DNA from: Salpingoeca rosetta
Lineage: Eukaryota > Protista > Choanoflagellata
DNA: 64,000 nt
Assembly (NCBI GenBank): GCA_033442325.1
Contig: JAWQFM010000007.1
Span: 997,684-1,061,683 of the forward strand
Reading direction: 5' to 3'
The translations under genes were made by a program, and so were the position numbers. This document shows positions 1,080-7,000 of this stretch, one piece after another. Every line of letters begins with the position of its first letter. The stretch's first letter is position 1. The notes under the pieces were generated by a model. It was not told the DNA's origin. It worked only from the letters and a program-made list of their open reading frames with translations, and did no database searches.

Positions 1080-4000
1080 GACAACAAAGCGGTGCTGCTC
1101 CTCGGAAGGCACAGCAAGCGGGCTTTCAGAGTGTAACAGGAACATGCGCAGTCCAACATCGGCGCCTGTGCTCTTGCTGGGAAACAGCTCAAGACACTGA
1201 CTCCCCTTCTTGTCCTTCACGCGCTTCTCAAGCGACTTGAACTGAGGAATGGCCCGCAGAACATTCGCCGGGCAGAACGCGTGCTGCCACTTCCCTTTGT
1301 CTTCCAGCGGCACCCGCACTTCTGCATTTGGTCGCCAGCTCTGGCCCGTGATCTGAACCAGGGACCCAAGCGCTGCTCGCAAGTCCGGCAGGGTCGGGAG
1401 ATGGCCGTCCTCAGACAGCGGCGATTGCACCTGAAAGCCGCGAACGAGGCTGCGCGCTGGGGCCGCCTGACCAAGTTCACCCTCCCACACAACCACGGCT
1501 GGGGACTCCTCATCCAGCGCGCCACCGGTGGTTTGCTCTGCAAACATCCCAAGAACAGCCCCCTTCCCATCAGAGCTGGTTGCAGTCTCTGATGCCTTGG
1601 TGGCTGGCTGGCTCTCTCCGCTCGTGGTGGCTTGCGCCTCAGCTGTAGCTGAGTTGCCCGTGTCTGTGCTGTTTGGCTTCTTCTCCTCTTCCTTGTTTGC
1701 CTGTGGAGCGGCAACAGGTGCTTTACCCCAAGCGCTCACCGGCGCAGAAGTGCCACCCTTACCGTCAGCACACGCACTGCTGCTGCTGCTGCTGCTGCTG
1801 CTGCTGCTGCCGTTGCCGTTGTTGTGGCTGTTGTTGTTCAGCGCATGGCGGATGGTATCATCGCTTGGCAGCGGCGGAACAGGAGGGGGGTGTGCCGCTT
1901 CTGACCTCGGTGCCATTCCCCAGCCATTGCCACCAGTCGCTTGCGGCTGGTTGGGTTCCTGGGGCCGCTGCTCTCGCTTTTTATCGTTTGAAGGCGCCGC
2001 CGACGCCCACCCCCACGCTCCGCCCGTTGCCGTCGCTGTGACTGCTCGGGGTGCGACTGCGCCCCACGCTGATGGCGGTGTGGCGGATGAGGGTGTGGTT
2101 TCTGCAGCCTGGGTTGCTGCCTTGGGTGCCGGCACGCCCCATGCGCTTGTTGCTGCTGTTGTGTTAGATGCCGAGACACCATGGCCACCAACACCTAGTG
2201 TTCCTGCTGATGAGGACAGCGCCGAGGCGCTTGCTTGTTCTGGACGGCTGACCGTCCCCGGCGGTGCTGGCGCCCCCCACGCGCTCGATGCCTGTGGCTC
2301 ACGCTGCTGGGTTTCCAAGCCGCTCCTGCCGCCATCGACACTCACAGGCTTGGCAGCTGCTTGCAGGGGCACCGATGCAGCATTTCCTGCTGTGAGTGTG
2401 GCCGCTGCCGTCAATGAGGCTTGGCCAACCGCACGCCCACGCCCACGTCCACGAACCACTGGCTGCTGCTGGTGTGACGCCTGGGCTGGGTCTGCCGCTG
2501 TTACTGGAGCCGCTGTGGTTGTGACTGGTGTTGTTGCTGCTGTCGCTGGTGGTGTTGTTGCTGGTACTGTTGTGGTTGTGACTGTTGTTGCTGCTGTCAC
2601 TGCTGGTGCTGTCGCTGGTGCTGCTGCTGTTGATGAGTCTGGCACTGGCGCCTTCACTCCCCACATGCCGGTTGCTCCGCTCGTTGCCGGCGGATGTGCA
2701 GGTTGCTGGCTGGGTCGTGATGCCTGCTGTTTCCCGCCGTCTTGCTGCTGTGACGGTGCCTGTGGCACAGGACCTGGTGCTGTTGCTGCTGTTGCTGCTG
2801 TTGCTGCTGTTGCTGCTGTGCTGCCCCAGGCATGCGCTGGTGCAGCAGTCGTGGCAACGCCGCCCGCCTTCTCCTGCGGCTTGGCTTGTGCGGTTTGCCC
2901 ACCCCACATGCCGGGAGCACTGCCTTGTGTCGACGAGGCTGATGATGGCGCCGCCGCAGGTTGTTGTGATTTGGACGGCGCTGCTGGGGACGACACTTTC
3001 CCGCCCCACGCAGATGCCGCAACGGCATGCGCTGGCTGCTTGGCCGCGACGACTGGTGCGGGCTGTGTTGCGCCCACACCCCAACCCGTAGACGGCTGTT
3101 CCGGCTGTCGGGCGTTTGAAGGCGCTGCCCATGCATTCACGGGCTTGCTGGCCTGGGGCGACGCAGCGCCCCACACAAACCCGGCCTTGCCTGCTGCCAC
3201 AGCTGGGGAGCTCACGCTAACGTCAGAGCCCTGGCTATCAGCACCCTTGGGTGTGCCCCACCCTGAGACAGCCGCGTTTGCAGTGGACGCTGGTGCCGTA
3301 GGGCTCCCCCACGCAGACATGGCCGCGCTGGCGGACGAGGGCGCGGTCGTGCCTTTTCCTGCTCCTGCTCCTGCTCCTGTGTTTGGCGAAGGAGAACCCC
3401 ACAGGGAGGACGCAGATGCTGATGCCAAAGAGGCGGTTGATGTTGAAGGGCTGGAACGAATCGGTGCTGAACCCCAGGAGTTCCCAACGTCTGACGGCTT
3501 GTGGCGGTCAGAGAACCGACGACCATCACGCCCACCACCACGCCCACCACGATCACCACCACGCCCACCACGGCCTCGACCTCTATCCCGACTGCGGTCG
3601 CGGTCACGGTCACGGTCACGGCCAAACCCTCGCCCGCCCACACTTCCACGCTTGTCACGGCCACTTCCAACGTCGCGGCGATCACGGTCTCCTCTGCCTT
3701 GGCTCCGGCTCCGCTCGCTGTCGCGCCGGGGTCGATCGCGCTCTCCTCCTCGGCCACGATCCCTCTCCCTGTCGCGCCTTGCACCGTCGCTCACAGACGA
3801 TCGCGAGCCCCGTCGGTCGCGGTCACGGTCGCGGTCACGGTCGCGGTCACGGTCGCGATTCGCGCTTCGTTCCCAGCCTCGGTCCCGGCCCATGTCTGCT
3901 TTGTCGCTACCGCTCGGCTGGCGTCCGTGGCTGGAGCTTGTGGTGCCTGTGGGGGTGGCTTTCCCTTTCCAATCACCGCTGCTGCCGGTGTTGGTGCCCG

Positions 4001-7000
4001 TGCTGCTAGGGATACTGGGCGAGGACTGGGCGACGGGTGTGCGTGGGGTCATTGCTGCTGAAGCGGCGTCAAAGGAGGTTGCAGGCGGGGGTGAAGGCGG
4101 CGTGCCCCACGGGATATCAGGGGCCTTTGGGCTGCTGCTGCTGGGAGGCTCGGCGCGGCCGGTGCCCAAGGGGGGCGACACCACCATCTGCGTTTGGAGC
4201 TCCGTCACACGAAACAACTCCTCAAAGCGGTCCTTGAGTCCACCGAGCTCTGCCGTGAAGTCAGTTCGCCAGCACCACATGTGCACGCGAATGCCTTTCT
4301 CCAGGGCGTCCGTGGCAACGGGGACAAAGAACAGGCTGTCTGAACCGCCGCCGGGGTTGACAACAAGCACAAGCTCGGTGGAGTTAGACTTGAGCTGCTC
4401 CAGCCAGCGGCGAATGCGCGCGTCTGGGCGAATGCCCTTGTAGCCGATGCGATTGTAGCGGTTTCGAAACGTATCCAGGAGCTCAAAGTGGTGGCGGTCC
4501 TCCAAGCGCTCGCGGATGTCGTTGTCAAAGGACGGAGCAAGGCTGGCAATGCGTTCGCCGGGATCCACCCCTGCAAGCACATGGCGCATCAGGTTGTCTG
4601 TGTCCACGTCCACGTGGTAATGCTTCTGCTTGTGCGCGCCAGATGCCACGGCTGTCATGTCGACATACACCATGGTTGGCGGAAGTGCTGGTGGTGCGGG
4701 CGGTGATGGTGCGGGCGGTGGCAACCCGACATCCGCCGCTGCCCACATGTCAAAGGGGTCCGGCTCAAGTGCCTGGTCCGGCACCGTGGACAGCGCGGGC
4801 GGGCCGGATGCCAAAGCTGGGCCGGTGCTGCGCAAGCGCGTGTGGTACTCGCGCAGCTCCAGGTCCACCATGGCCATGCTCGCGCGCAGGGTTGGCTGGT
4901 CCACCTCCCCGGTGACGACGTGGTACAGGAACGTGGGCTTGAGCTGGCGCGGGCGCTGCCGAAACCCGTCGTCATCAAAATCAAAGAAGAGGGAGTAGCA
5001 GAAGGCCGGGTGCGGCTTGGGCGCGCTGGAGAGGAAGCGACAGTGGTGGACGTCCGCGCTCTCGGGCTCATACCGCGTCTCGTCCGTGACCAGCATCACC
5101 GAGCTGTCGTAATAAGCCGTCTCAAACAGCAAAATGAACGTTTCCTTCCCAGCGGGGAGCGGGTGCTCCGTGAAGTTTGGGCACGGCCACGCGTACACGC
5201 CGTTGTTGTCGAGCGGGCTGGTCGGGTCGCGCTGCTGCTCACGCGTGAGCCCGTTTGCACAGAGATCAACGGCAGCCGTAATCGTGTCGCACAGCATGAA
5301 GTATGCCTTGCGTTTCACCTTCTTCGCCCCTGCCTGCACGGCTGCAGACTTTGCCCGCCTTCGAGCGGTGGCTTCCAGGTCCTCCAGCTTGAGGTTCCAC
5401 TCTGCCTCAAACACCGGGTTGTCAATCCTTGCCGCAGACACAATGCTGACGGAGGGGCCGGCGCGGTCAAGGTACTCCTGCAGCAGCTTCACCGCCTCCA
5501 TGTGCTGGGGTGTGCCCTTGAATAGGTGGTCAAGCCGCGTTTCCACTTGCGGCTCCCGGCTTTCCAGGTCCGCAGCGCCCTCGGCAGCAAGGGTTGTGAT
5601 GGTGGTGGGTGTGGAGGACACATGCGGGCCGCGTGGCTCGGGCGACGGCGACGAGGAGGGAGAGCGCCGGCGGTGCCGCTGCTGCTTCCGCCCAGTGCAC
5701 CTGCTCAGTGGACTATCTGTTGCTGCTGCTGCTGCTGCTGCTGCTGCTGCTGCTGCTGCTGCTGCTGCTGCTGCTGTTGACATAGATGATGAGCCACGGC
5801 GGCGCCGCGTGCCAGGTGATGGGTTGATATCGCCCTTCTTTGTACTTGGCGCTCCTGCACCCCAGCCCAGTGATGCCGAAGCCGCTTCTCTCTTGACACC
5901 ATTGCCACCGTCAATGCCGCTGGCTTTAGCCGTGCTGGTGGTACTTGCGAGTCCCCAGCCGCTTGTGGTGGTGGCCGTCGTGCTGTTGCTGCTACTGCTA
6001 CTGTTGTTTGCGCCTGCAGCTCCCCAGCCACCACTACTCACGTTTGATGGTCGCGGCGATGACGGGGATGAGATTGAGGAAGCAGATGTCGGTGAGATGC
6101 CCCACCCCGCAGCGAACGAGGTAGTGGTGGTGGTGGTGGTGGTGGTGTCGGAGAGGGATCGTGGTACGGACGGCAGGGGTGGGTTCTTGTTTCGAGAAGA
6201 CCGTGGCTTTGCAGCAGGCAGTGTGGAACGAAGCTTGTCCATCCCCTGCAGCAAATCGAGCTTGCTGCGGGCTGATGTGGCTTTCTTTGTCCTGGTCTGT
6301 GCGGCCGCTGACCTCGATGTTGACCGCAGGGAGCCCGTGCTCGATGCTCGTGTTTTTGTAGTTGGCGCGCTGGATCCGTCCAAACTCAAGCTGAGGGGGC
6401 GGGTGCGCTTCGGCGTTGCCTTGACTGTACCCGCGAGGCGAGGGTCCCGCAGCGCCCCCTTTCCCTTGCCGCCCATGCTCTTCTTGGGTGGCTTCCTCGT
6501 GGCGGTAACGGCACGCTGTGAGGACTTGGGCATCACAATCACGTCATCATCATCGTCACTGCTGCTGCTGATGATGGCAGGCTTGAAGTCTTTGTCCTTT
6601 GCTGCATCTGCCTTCTTGCTGGTGTTGAGCGCGCGAATATCGTCGTCGTCGTCGCTGCTGCCGTCACTGTCGTCAACGAAGCGGCTCTGTTTCTTTGACC
6701 CTGATGGCGGGGCAGAGGTTGTGAGCTTTGGGCGCTTTGGCTGGTTGCCGCTGCTTCTTGCTGACGACGTCGATGTCGGGGCTGTGGTGGACGTGGTGCT
6801 GCCGCTGCTGCTCGCTGATGTGGCTGATGTCGAGCTGTTGACGGTTGCTGGTGGTGTGGAGATGTTTGCCTGAGCGTTGCGGCGCTTTGCGTGCTTTTTC
6901 AGAGCGTGCTCGAATTCGTATACCTTCTTTGCTTCTCGCTTGTTGAGGTAGCGCTGGGGCACCCATTTGGGCTGGATGCGCGGGCCGTAGTCAAAGTGGT

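Follow-up and report, generated by a model that had tools for sequence, protein, structure and literature searches.

A WG-motif array on a chromodomain protein of Salpingoeca rosetta, a choanoflagellate with no detectable Argonaute

We analysed a stretch of 64,000 nucleotides from the choanoflagellate Salpingoeca rosetta (GenBank assembly GCA_033442325.1, contig JAWQFM010000007.1, positions 997,684 to 1,061,683 of the forward strand), which is called the window below and to which all positions given without a contig name refer. A gene on its minus strand encodes a chromodomain protein with 21 Trp-Gly (WG) dipeptides, arranged in low-complexity tracts that resemble Argonaute (AGO) hooks, and the genome contains no detectable Argonaute. 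What is new here is that a hook-type WG array occurs on a new carrier and in a lineage that lacks Argonaute. Because no Argonaute is detectable, the hooks probably serve another partner, and we tentatively suggest one with a Trp pocket of its own.

A chromodomain protein with 21 WG motifs

The large coding exon of the gene (exon 3) encodes 37 Trp residues and exactly 21 WG dipeptides, nine of which read GWG. An earlier reading of the window from its letters (the original prediction) had counted 21 WG motifs within 1720-6110; when the Trp codons were located in the translation, both the number and the span proved right. Two clusters of motifs are separated by a single one. Cluster 1 (5859-6104) consists of four GWG motifs, AAGWG, SGGWG, TSGWG and SLGWG (Trp codons starting at 6104, 6026, 5957 and 5864), which lie 23-31 residues apart in an S/A/T-rich tract. 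An isolated DIPWG (4104-4109, Trp codon starting at 4109) stands directly after the NYN-like domain described below. Cluster 2 (1725-3476) comprises 16 motifs, with Trp codons starting at 3476, 3401, 3311, 3260, 3173, 3083, 3008, 2906, 2828, 2663, 2279, 2141, 2066, 2015, 1922 and 1730, and follows the consensus [A/S]-x-[S/G]-[A/G]-W-G-[A/S/V/T]-[A/P]-[A/P]-P.

It had also been claimed that nearly every Trp of the low-complexity sequence is followed by Gly, and this was borne out: Gly comes next in 21 of the 25 Trp residues of the two A/S/T/G/P-rich tracts, at a Gly frequency of 0.109 (binomial P 4.7e-17). The number of WG dipeptides reached in 5000 residue shuffles was at most 3 in tract 1 and 9 in tract 2, compared with 4 and 17 observed. 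None of the 12 Trp residues in the folded parts of the exon 3 product has Gly as its next residue, and in the rest of the window, in stop-free stretches of at least 200 residues, 18 of 358 Trp residues do (5%), which equals the Gly frequency. The Gly codons after Trp are GGC (8), GGT (6), GGA (4) and GGG (3), the codons preceding Trp are also varied, and Tandem Repeats Finder reported no tandem repeat spanning the WG motifs, only short repeats of 3 to 54 nucleotides. Therefore, the WG signal lies at the protein level and does not come from a recent DNA repeat. The motifs of cluster 2 are at least 17 residues apart, mostly 17-34, a regularity with P 0.00055 under random placement.

AGO hooks have a characteristic composition, in which W, G, S, A, N and D are favoured and L, I, M, Y and C are disfavoured (Karlowski 2010). 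In tracts 1 and 2, the favoured residues make up a fraction of 0.68 and 0.55, and the disfavoured residues 0.052 and 0.029, respectively. Tract 2 contains 30% A+G, 12% P, 3% W and 2.9% L/I/M/Y/C, and its aromatic residues are 21 W, 5 F and no Y. With many W-G pairs, a small-residue context, depletion of L/I/M/Y/C and a spacing of at least 17 residues, the array fits the description of an AGO hook. The definition further asks for an Argonaute or PIWI protein encoded in the same organism, and none was found. The Argonaute-hook-like platform proposed in the original prediction is thus recovered as far as the description of the motifs goes, but the genome has no detectable Argonaute to which it could bind.

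Trp accounts for 3-4% of the residues in the tracts. In disordered sequence no residue is normally rarer than Trp, and its frequency here therefore speaks for maintenance by selection. We infer that the array is under selection and that the tracts are disordered.

Gene structure and expression

The list of open reading frames contains a minus-strand stop-free frame of 2026 residues (7133-1056). From this list and RNA-seq data, exon 3 was delimited as a single 6.1-kb coding exon of 2028 codons (1056-7139, minus strand), with the stop codon at 1053-1055. In four RNA reads (run X18) the match to exon 3 breaks off at 7139, and the following 30 letters correspond exactly to 7750-7779. Therefore, the intron 7749-7140 (GTATGT...CAATAG, with a long (CT)n/(GA)n microsatellite inside) is removed, and the chromodomain, the N-terminal two thirds of which are encoded by the 117-nucleotide exon 2 (7750-7866, minus strand), is placed on one mRNA with all 21 WG motifs. 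Further upstream, ATG GCG GAC GAG followed by a GT donor (8195-8206, minus strand) is in frame with exon 2 and is the predicted first coding exon; counting its four codons, the whole protein is predicted to have 2071 residues. Long dinucleotide microsatellites are present in both 5' introns, (GA/CT)n in intron 2 (7260-7400) and (GT/CA)n in intron 1 (8000-8095).

Three stranded RNA-seq runs were mapped onto positions 1200-7199. Every bin was covered in two of the runs and 28 of 30 bins in the third, and none of the three contained a read-supported intron joint inside exon 3. The first mates over exon 3 were found almost exclusively on the plus strand. Since a first mate on the plus strand corresponds to minus-strand RNA in most stranded libraries, the exon 3 RNA comes from the minus strand. 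Loose ends of RNA reads at 2571, 2636, 3815-3854 and similar positions were considered as splice sites and rejected; these ends fall in low-complexity repeats and do not map to the window, and they were taken as cross-mapping. Base differences in RNA reads or contigs were also seen at 3831, 3843 and 5994-5995, inside low-complexity repeats, and are most likely due to cross-mapping from similar repeats elsewhere, not to editing.

Search for Argonaute and other RNA interference components

RNA interference (RNAi) components were reported missing from S. rosetta and M. brevicollis, while Argonaute occurs in other choanoflagellates and has been lost repeatedly (Richter et al. 2018). We searched the 55.4-Mb assembly, some stretches of which are N, in six frames and exon by exon with hidden Markov models (HMMs). 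The Piwi HMM yielded a single candidate of 16 bits on contig 2, which is spurious: the gene at this site, with an Rpb1-type RNA polymerase domain, runs antisense to it. Across the same assembly the PAZ HMM matched nothing and the ArgoL1 HMM gave only sub-threshold matches of 15.8 bits. The same exon-by-exon search recovered the intron-split genes of CNOT9 (33.5 and 30.2 bits) and SPT6 (68 bits) and therefore works on this genome. The absence of Argonaute and Dicer, which the original prediction had put forward as needing verification, is accordingly backed by the published survey, and its Argonaute part also by our negative Piwi, PAZ and ArgoL1 searches.

A possible cryptic Dicer was looked for as well. 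Close to the C-terminus of an open frame of 1645 residues on contig 11 (754422-759356, plus strand), an RNase III half-domain scored below threshold (18.9 bits with hmmscan and 22.4 bits when the genome was searched). Neither a helicase nor a PAZ or Dicer_dimer domain was detected in this frame, and the Dicer_dimer HMM gave sub-threshold matches elsewhere in the genome. With the RNase III half-domain below threshold, the identity of this frame as Dicer was not confirmed, and the outcome for Argonaute is unaffected.

A second WG array near SPT6

SPT6 was located in the genome through its SH2 domain (SH2_2; contig 10, 397100-397854). On the same strand, approximately 1.1 kb downstream of this domain, lies a terminal stop-free frame (contig 10, 399185-399913, plus strand), the tail of which has 10 Trp residues and 9 WG dipeptides (P 7e-10) in the motifs ATAWGAD, APAWGTP, SAAWGTP, SSAWGAP, AASWGQP, QSGWGNT, GNAWGST and GGWGWGQ, the last with two overlapping WG. 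The tail is a putative part of SPT6. Outside plants, SPT6 has been described as being without an AGO hook (Cermak et al., 2024 preprint). The tail shares with the chromodomain protein the flavour [A/S][A/G]WG[T/A/S]P, and the tracts of the two proteins cannot be aligned. The use of the same WG dialect in two proteins linked to transcription or chromatin argues for a common reader, one that would act at transcribed chromatin, or a common phase.

A DNA pattern of three [A/G]WG motifs was also run over the 55-Mb genome. It gave two matches in the WG gene and matches at three microsatellite loci, with two control matches, and cluster 1 was its only protein-coding match. This strict pattern missed the array near SPT6, so the census gives a minimum number of WG arrays. 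Used as a protein query, tract 2 recovered only itself.

Domains of the carrier protein

The Pfam Chromo profile matched exon 2 over profile positions 1-36 of 53 (E 4.1e-12, 46.3 bits with a cut-off of 25.1), and the remainder of the chromodomain is found at the start of exon 3 (EGLELCHGFVEDF...). In the spliced translation, judged by what is known of HP1-type domains, the aromatic-cage positions are present as Y in LYEVE and as W and Y in KWLGY. No family other than the chromodomain is confirmed for the protein. Pfam assigned no family to the exon 3 product or to five pieces of it, and NCBIfam and PADLOC scans of the exon 3 product gave no match. Word searches with residues 520-1005, with the NYN-like piece and with residues 1871-2026 found no homologues, and for residues 520-1005 exhaustive phmmer comparison with 1.84 billion cluster representatives was equally negative.

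Residues 520-780 (4794-5576, minus strand) are probably a PARP-like domain. In the ESM-Atlas, the best named cluster for this region was the PARP catalytic domain (0.95), and 69 of 100 matches belonged to that family set. A phmmer search of the PDB gave a weak match to the PARP10 catalytic domain (E 0.01) in two collinear segments (query 14-77 with chain 7-70, and query 163-183 with chain 114-134). The Pfam PARP profile did not match the region. DUF3715 (PF12509) gave no match in hmmscan at E values up to 10 or in a six-frame genome search made without a positive control. For residues 830-1005 (4119-4646, minus strand) a NYN/PIN-like domain is probable from ESM-Atlas features: NYN clusters scored 0.92 and accounted for 98 of 100 matches, with 183-184 of 256 features shared and a recognition value of 3001. 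This region had no match in Pfam, NCBIfam, PADLOC or phmmer.

Between the NYN-like domain and tract 2 lies an Arg-rich tract (3489-3887, minus strand), in which RD dipeptide repeats are followed by RG/RGG repeats; at the DNA level, Tandem Repeats Finder reported periods of 6 and 12 at 3595-3621 and 3814-3857. Sequences of the RD/RG/RGG type are typical of arginine methylation and RNA binding. A second Arg-rich run, RGRGRGR, is present inside tract 2 at approximately 2390-2420.

The protein ends in a hydrophobic, non-repetitive stretch of 156 residues (1056-1523, minus strand), which we read as a folded C-terminal domain. It had no match in Pfam, the PDB, ESM-Atlas, NCBIfam or PADLOC, and a Foldseek search with its AlphaFold2 model (predicted local distance difference test, pLDDT, 49) returned noise matches only. 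Its identity as a SPOC domain was considered and is unsupported, as the SPOC HMM had no match in the WG gene (Pfam and genome search) and no SPOC match was obtained in the PDB or the Atlas.

Some other features of the locus were recorded. Two Ser/Asp-rich acidic clusters, DDSDGSSDDDDD and SSSSDDDDD, are encoded at 6480-6660 on the minus strand (approximately residues 160-215 of exon 3). The second runs directly into a VIVM hydrophobic core, and the combination recalls a phospho-regulated SUMO-interaction motif. The run of about 18 Ala residues between cluster 1 and the PARP-like domain comes from a perfect plus-strand (CTG)20 (5717-5776), at which RNA reads look truncated because repeats are skipped in read mapping. 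Neighbouring plus-strand frames at approximately 250-480 and 700-850 appear SH2-exon-like by eye (GTFIVRTTTSQ, DSIPHMVRH), and the upstream neighbour may be an SH2 protein.

DISCUSSION

Our working explanation, which we hold tentatively, is that the protein is a selected multivalent Trp-motif platform on a chromatin scaffold similar to those of the RNA-induced transcriptional silencing (RITS) and human silencing hub (HUSH) complexes, and that it may dock a non-Argonaute partner with Trp pockets, for which CCR4-NOT is the first candidate. According to this model, two disordered arms would carry the 21 WG motifs on a scaffold bound to chromatin. The N-terminal chromodomain of the scaffold would read methyl-lysine chromatin, and its core of PARP-like and NYN-like domains, together with the RD/RG tract, could contact nascent RNA or effectors. 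Each exposed Trp, flanked by small residues and at least 17 residues away from the next one, would enter a hydrophobic Trp pocket of the partner, so that several partner molecules could be bound simultaneously. The leading candidate for the partner would be the CCR4-NOT deadenylase (CNOT9/CNOT1), with PAN3 as the second, and its docking would link marked chromatin to nascent-transcript decay, in the manner of RITS and HUSH. We infer a nuclear silencing function and every one of these binding steps.

The strict occurrence of Gly after Trp and of a small residue before it is a requirement of W-motifs that insert into pockets, which points to docking; since the genome is without Argonaute, the partner would have to be another Trp-pocket protein. 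Non-Argonaute receptors of this kind are known from GW182, which uses the Trp pockets of CNOT9, CNOT1 and PAN3, and the W-motifs of GW182 also recruit CCR4-NOT. CNOT9 (Rcd1), a known Trp-pocket protein, is encoded in the S. rosetta genome in small exons (contig 11, 653757-658117). TASOR/HUSH and RITS associate with CNOT1 (Matkovic 2022), and chromodomain, PIN and low-complexity parts are common to HUSH and RITS (Douse 2020).

Several observations weigh against such a docking platform. Compared with classical hooks, the tracts have more Ala and Pro and less Asn, Asp and Glu, and hook calls based on composition are known for false positives (Karlowski 2010). Sequence searches found no orthologue of the WG protein. 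The assignment of the PARP-like and NYN-like domains comes from language-model features and one weak alignment, the DUF3715, NYN and SPOC HMMs had no match in the WG gene, and single-sequence AlphaFold2 models were poor (pLDDT 33 for the mid region and 49 for the C-terminal domain). The analogy with RITS and HUSH is therefore an architectural one. In addition, CNOT9 is encoded in numerous short exons, with a run of about 370 N at the locus.

A more far-reaching version of the proposal is that the protein is a single-chain relative of RITS and HUSH, uniting a hook platform with a chromodomain reader, a PIN-like domain and a pseudo-PARP, and that its hooks and the SPT6 tail are left from an ancestral holozoan co-transcriptional nuclear RNAi pathway and were retained and rewired after the loss of Argonaute, e.g. 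to CCR4-NOT. We regard this version as speculative and rather improbable. If true, the protein would be a living intermediate between small-RNA-guided (RITS, PIWI-interacting RNA/TEX15) and small-RNA-independent (HUSH) forms of transcript-coupled heterochromatin silencing.

The main alternative explanation, possible although we consider it doubtful, is that the tracts form a condensate of the sticker-and-spacer type or a cohesive domain like those of FG (Phe-Gly) nucleoporins, with Trp stickers in an A/S/T/G/P spacer and cation-pi contacts to the RG/RD tract. The protein would then self-associate or partition into nuclear bodies or phases rich in transport receptors instead of docking into pockets, and the two modes can coexist. 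Another Trp-pocket protein and condensates had both been listed as options in the original prediction. Trp is nearly the sole aromatic residue of the tracts, the regular spacing has its minimum at 17 residues, and the Arg-rich tract is situated directly upstream of tract 2, all as expected for a condensate. The sequences S-A-W-G and S-G-W-G in S/T/A/G/P spacers resemble FG-repeat domains with W in place of F. Moreover, self-association of Periphilin and of Tas3 is needed for HUSH and RITS, respectively (Douse 2020), and that of Periphilin depends on aromatic residues; AGO hooks themselves have been proposed in the literature as condensate drivers. However, pure stickers leave unexplained why Gly follows Trp almost without exception and why a small residue precedes it, and why the same dialect recurs in the unrelated tail near SPT6.

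The original prediction had offered, as one option, that the hooks are relics, i.e. an ancestral choanoflagellate array for Argonaute binding that is now decaying after the loss of its partner. The occurrence of Argonaute in other choanoflagellates and its repeated loss (Richter 2018) are in line with this option, as is an architecture that recalls Argonaute-linked nuclear silencing complexes, and the loss could be very recent. Nevertheless, no signs of decay are seen: the tract Trp residues are still largely WG, they are regularly spaced, and the Gly that follows them is encoded by all four codons. With its single codon and its rarity in disordered sequence, Trp should erode fast without selection. 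The gene is expressed, and a second array, also intact, is found near SPT6. Because the signal is strong and regular and this second array exists, we consider relic hooks unlikely.

That the array is a true Argonaute hook and that Argonaute itself has been missed, because it is divergent, lies in an assembly gap or is finely split by introns, was another option of the original prediction and is now very unlikely. The exon-by-exon search did start from a loose filter, and parts of the assembly are N, but Piwi is among the best-conserved eukaryotic domains and its best candidate was the antisense 16-bit match. Moreover, a method that left PAZ empty and ArgoL1 below threshold finds CNOT9 and SPT6 exons at 30-68 bits, and surveys of the proteome and transcriptome also report absence (Richter 2018). 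A compositional accident, by which chance, codon bias or microsatellite bias in GC-rich low-complexity DNA produced the WG dipeptides, could appeal to the GC content of the gene (62-69%) and its trinucleotide runs, but it is refuted, with a negligible residual probability, by the statistics (binomial P 5e-17, the observed count being unreached in any shuffle), by the variety of the codons before and after Trp, by the lack of a motif-spanning tandem repeat and by the 5% background rate of Gly after Trp in the window.

Among known systems, the plant NRPE1 C-terminal domain, SPT5L and SPT6L and the Tas3-Chp1 core of RITS appear closest in function to the proposed docking platform, and HUSH appears closest in Argonaute-independence and in its domain vocabulary. 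In the plant platforms, too, tens of WG/GW motifs are carried by a disordered tract of a protein bound to chromatin or to the transcription machinery, and only the W-G pair and the small-residue composition are conserved; the WG tail near SPT6 provides a parallel to SPT6L. In contrast to the S. rosetta array, the plant hooks bind proteins of the AGO4 clade that the plant itself encodes, while S. rosetta has no detectable Argonaute, their carriers are unrelated, and their tracts contain less Ala and Pro and more Asn, Asp and Glu. The Schizosaccharomyces pombe RITS complex (Chp1 with chromodomain, SPOC and PIN domains, the GW protein Tas3, and Ago1) likewise combines a chromodomain reader, a domain similar to the PIN superfamily and a low-complexity part with GW/WG. 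Tas3 has very few GW motifs, compared with 21 here. Further differences are that the S. rosetta parts are on a single polypeptide, that no Ago1 is present, that the PARP-like domain is absent from Chp1 and that no SPOC domain was detected.

Vertebrate HUSH (TASOR with pseudo-PARP, SPOC and PIN domains, MPP8 with a chromodomain, and the low-complexity protein Periphilin) is independent of Argonaute and comprises a chromodomain, PARP-like and PIN-like domains and an aromatic disordered region. HUSH subunits are not known for WG arrays. HUSH is also linked to CCR4-NOT/CNOT1 and to nuclear RNA decay (Matkovic 2022). Unlike in HUSH, no DUF3715, SPOC or DomI match was obtained here, and the domains occur in another order: in TASOR, SPOC and DomI come after the pseudo-PARP (Schopp 2023), whereas the PARP-like part of the S. 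rosetta protein is followed by the NYN-like domain. In our literature search, no publication connected choanoflagellates with TASOR or HUSH.

GW182/TNRC6 proteins also have many GW/WG motifs in disordered regions, those of GW182 binding Trp pockets of Argonaute and of the CCR4-NOT and PAN3 receptors named above. However, UBA, Q-rich, PAM2 and RRM regions were not detected here with Pfam, GW182 is cytoplasmic while the S. rosetta protein has a chromodomain, and GW182 has been reported to be animal-specific and absent from choanoflagellates. FG nucleoporins have an aromatic-Gly pair every 15-35 residues in a disordered spacer rich in S/T/A/G/P; they differ in using Phe instead of Trp, and the carrier described here has domains of the chromatin and RNA type and no nucleoporin domain. 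Membership in the GW182, TASOR/TEX15 or SPOC families is not supported.

GW/WG arrays are usually taken as diagnostic of Argonaute partners, yet here an array of 21 motifs and a second one near SPT6 occur in an organism that has no Argonaute. This is a caution against AGO-hook calls made from composition alone. It also indicates that hook-type arrays can be retained for a non-Argonaute purpose, and S. rosetta offers a clean system for identifying it. Should CCR4-NOT or a similar complex prove to be the reader, this would support the view that, of the two sides of GW proteins, effector and Argonaute, the former is the older and more general, and it would link the logics of RITS, HUSH and plant RNA polymerase V/SPT6L in a genetically tractable close relative of animals. 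The question of what else GW/WG arrays read thereby becomes directly testable.

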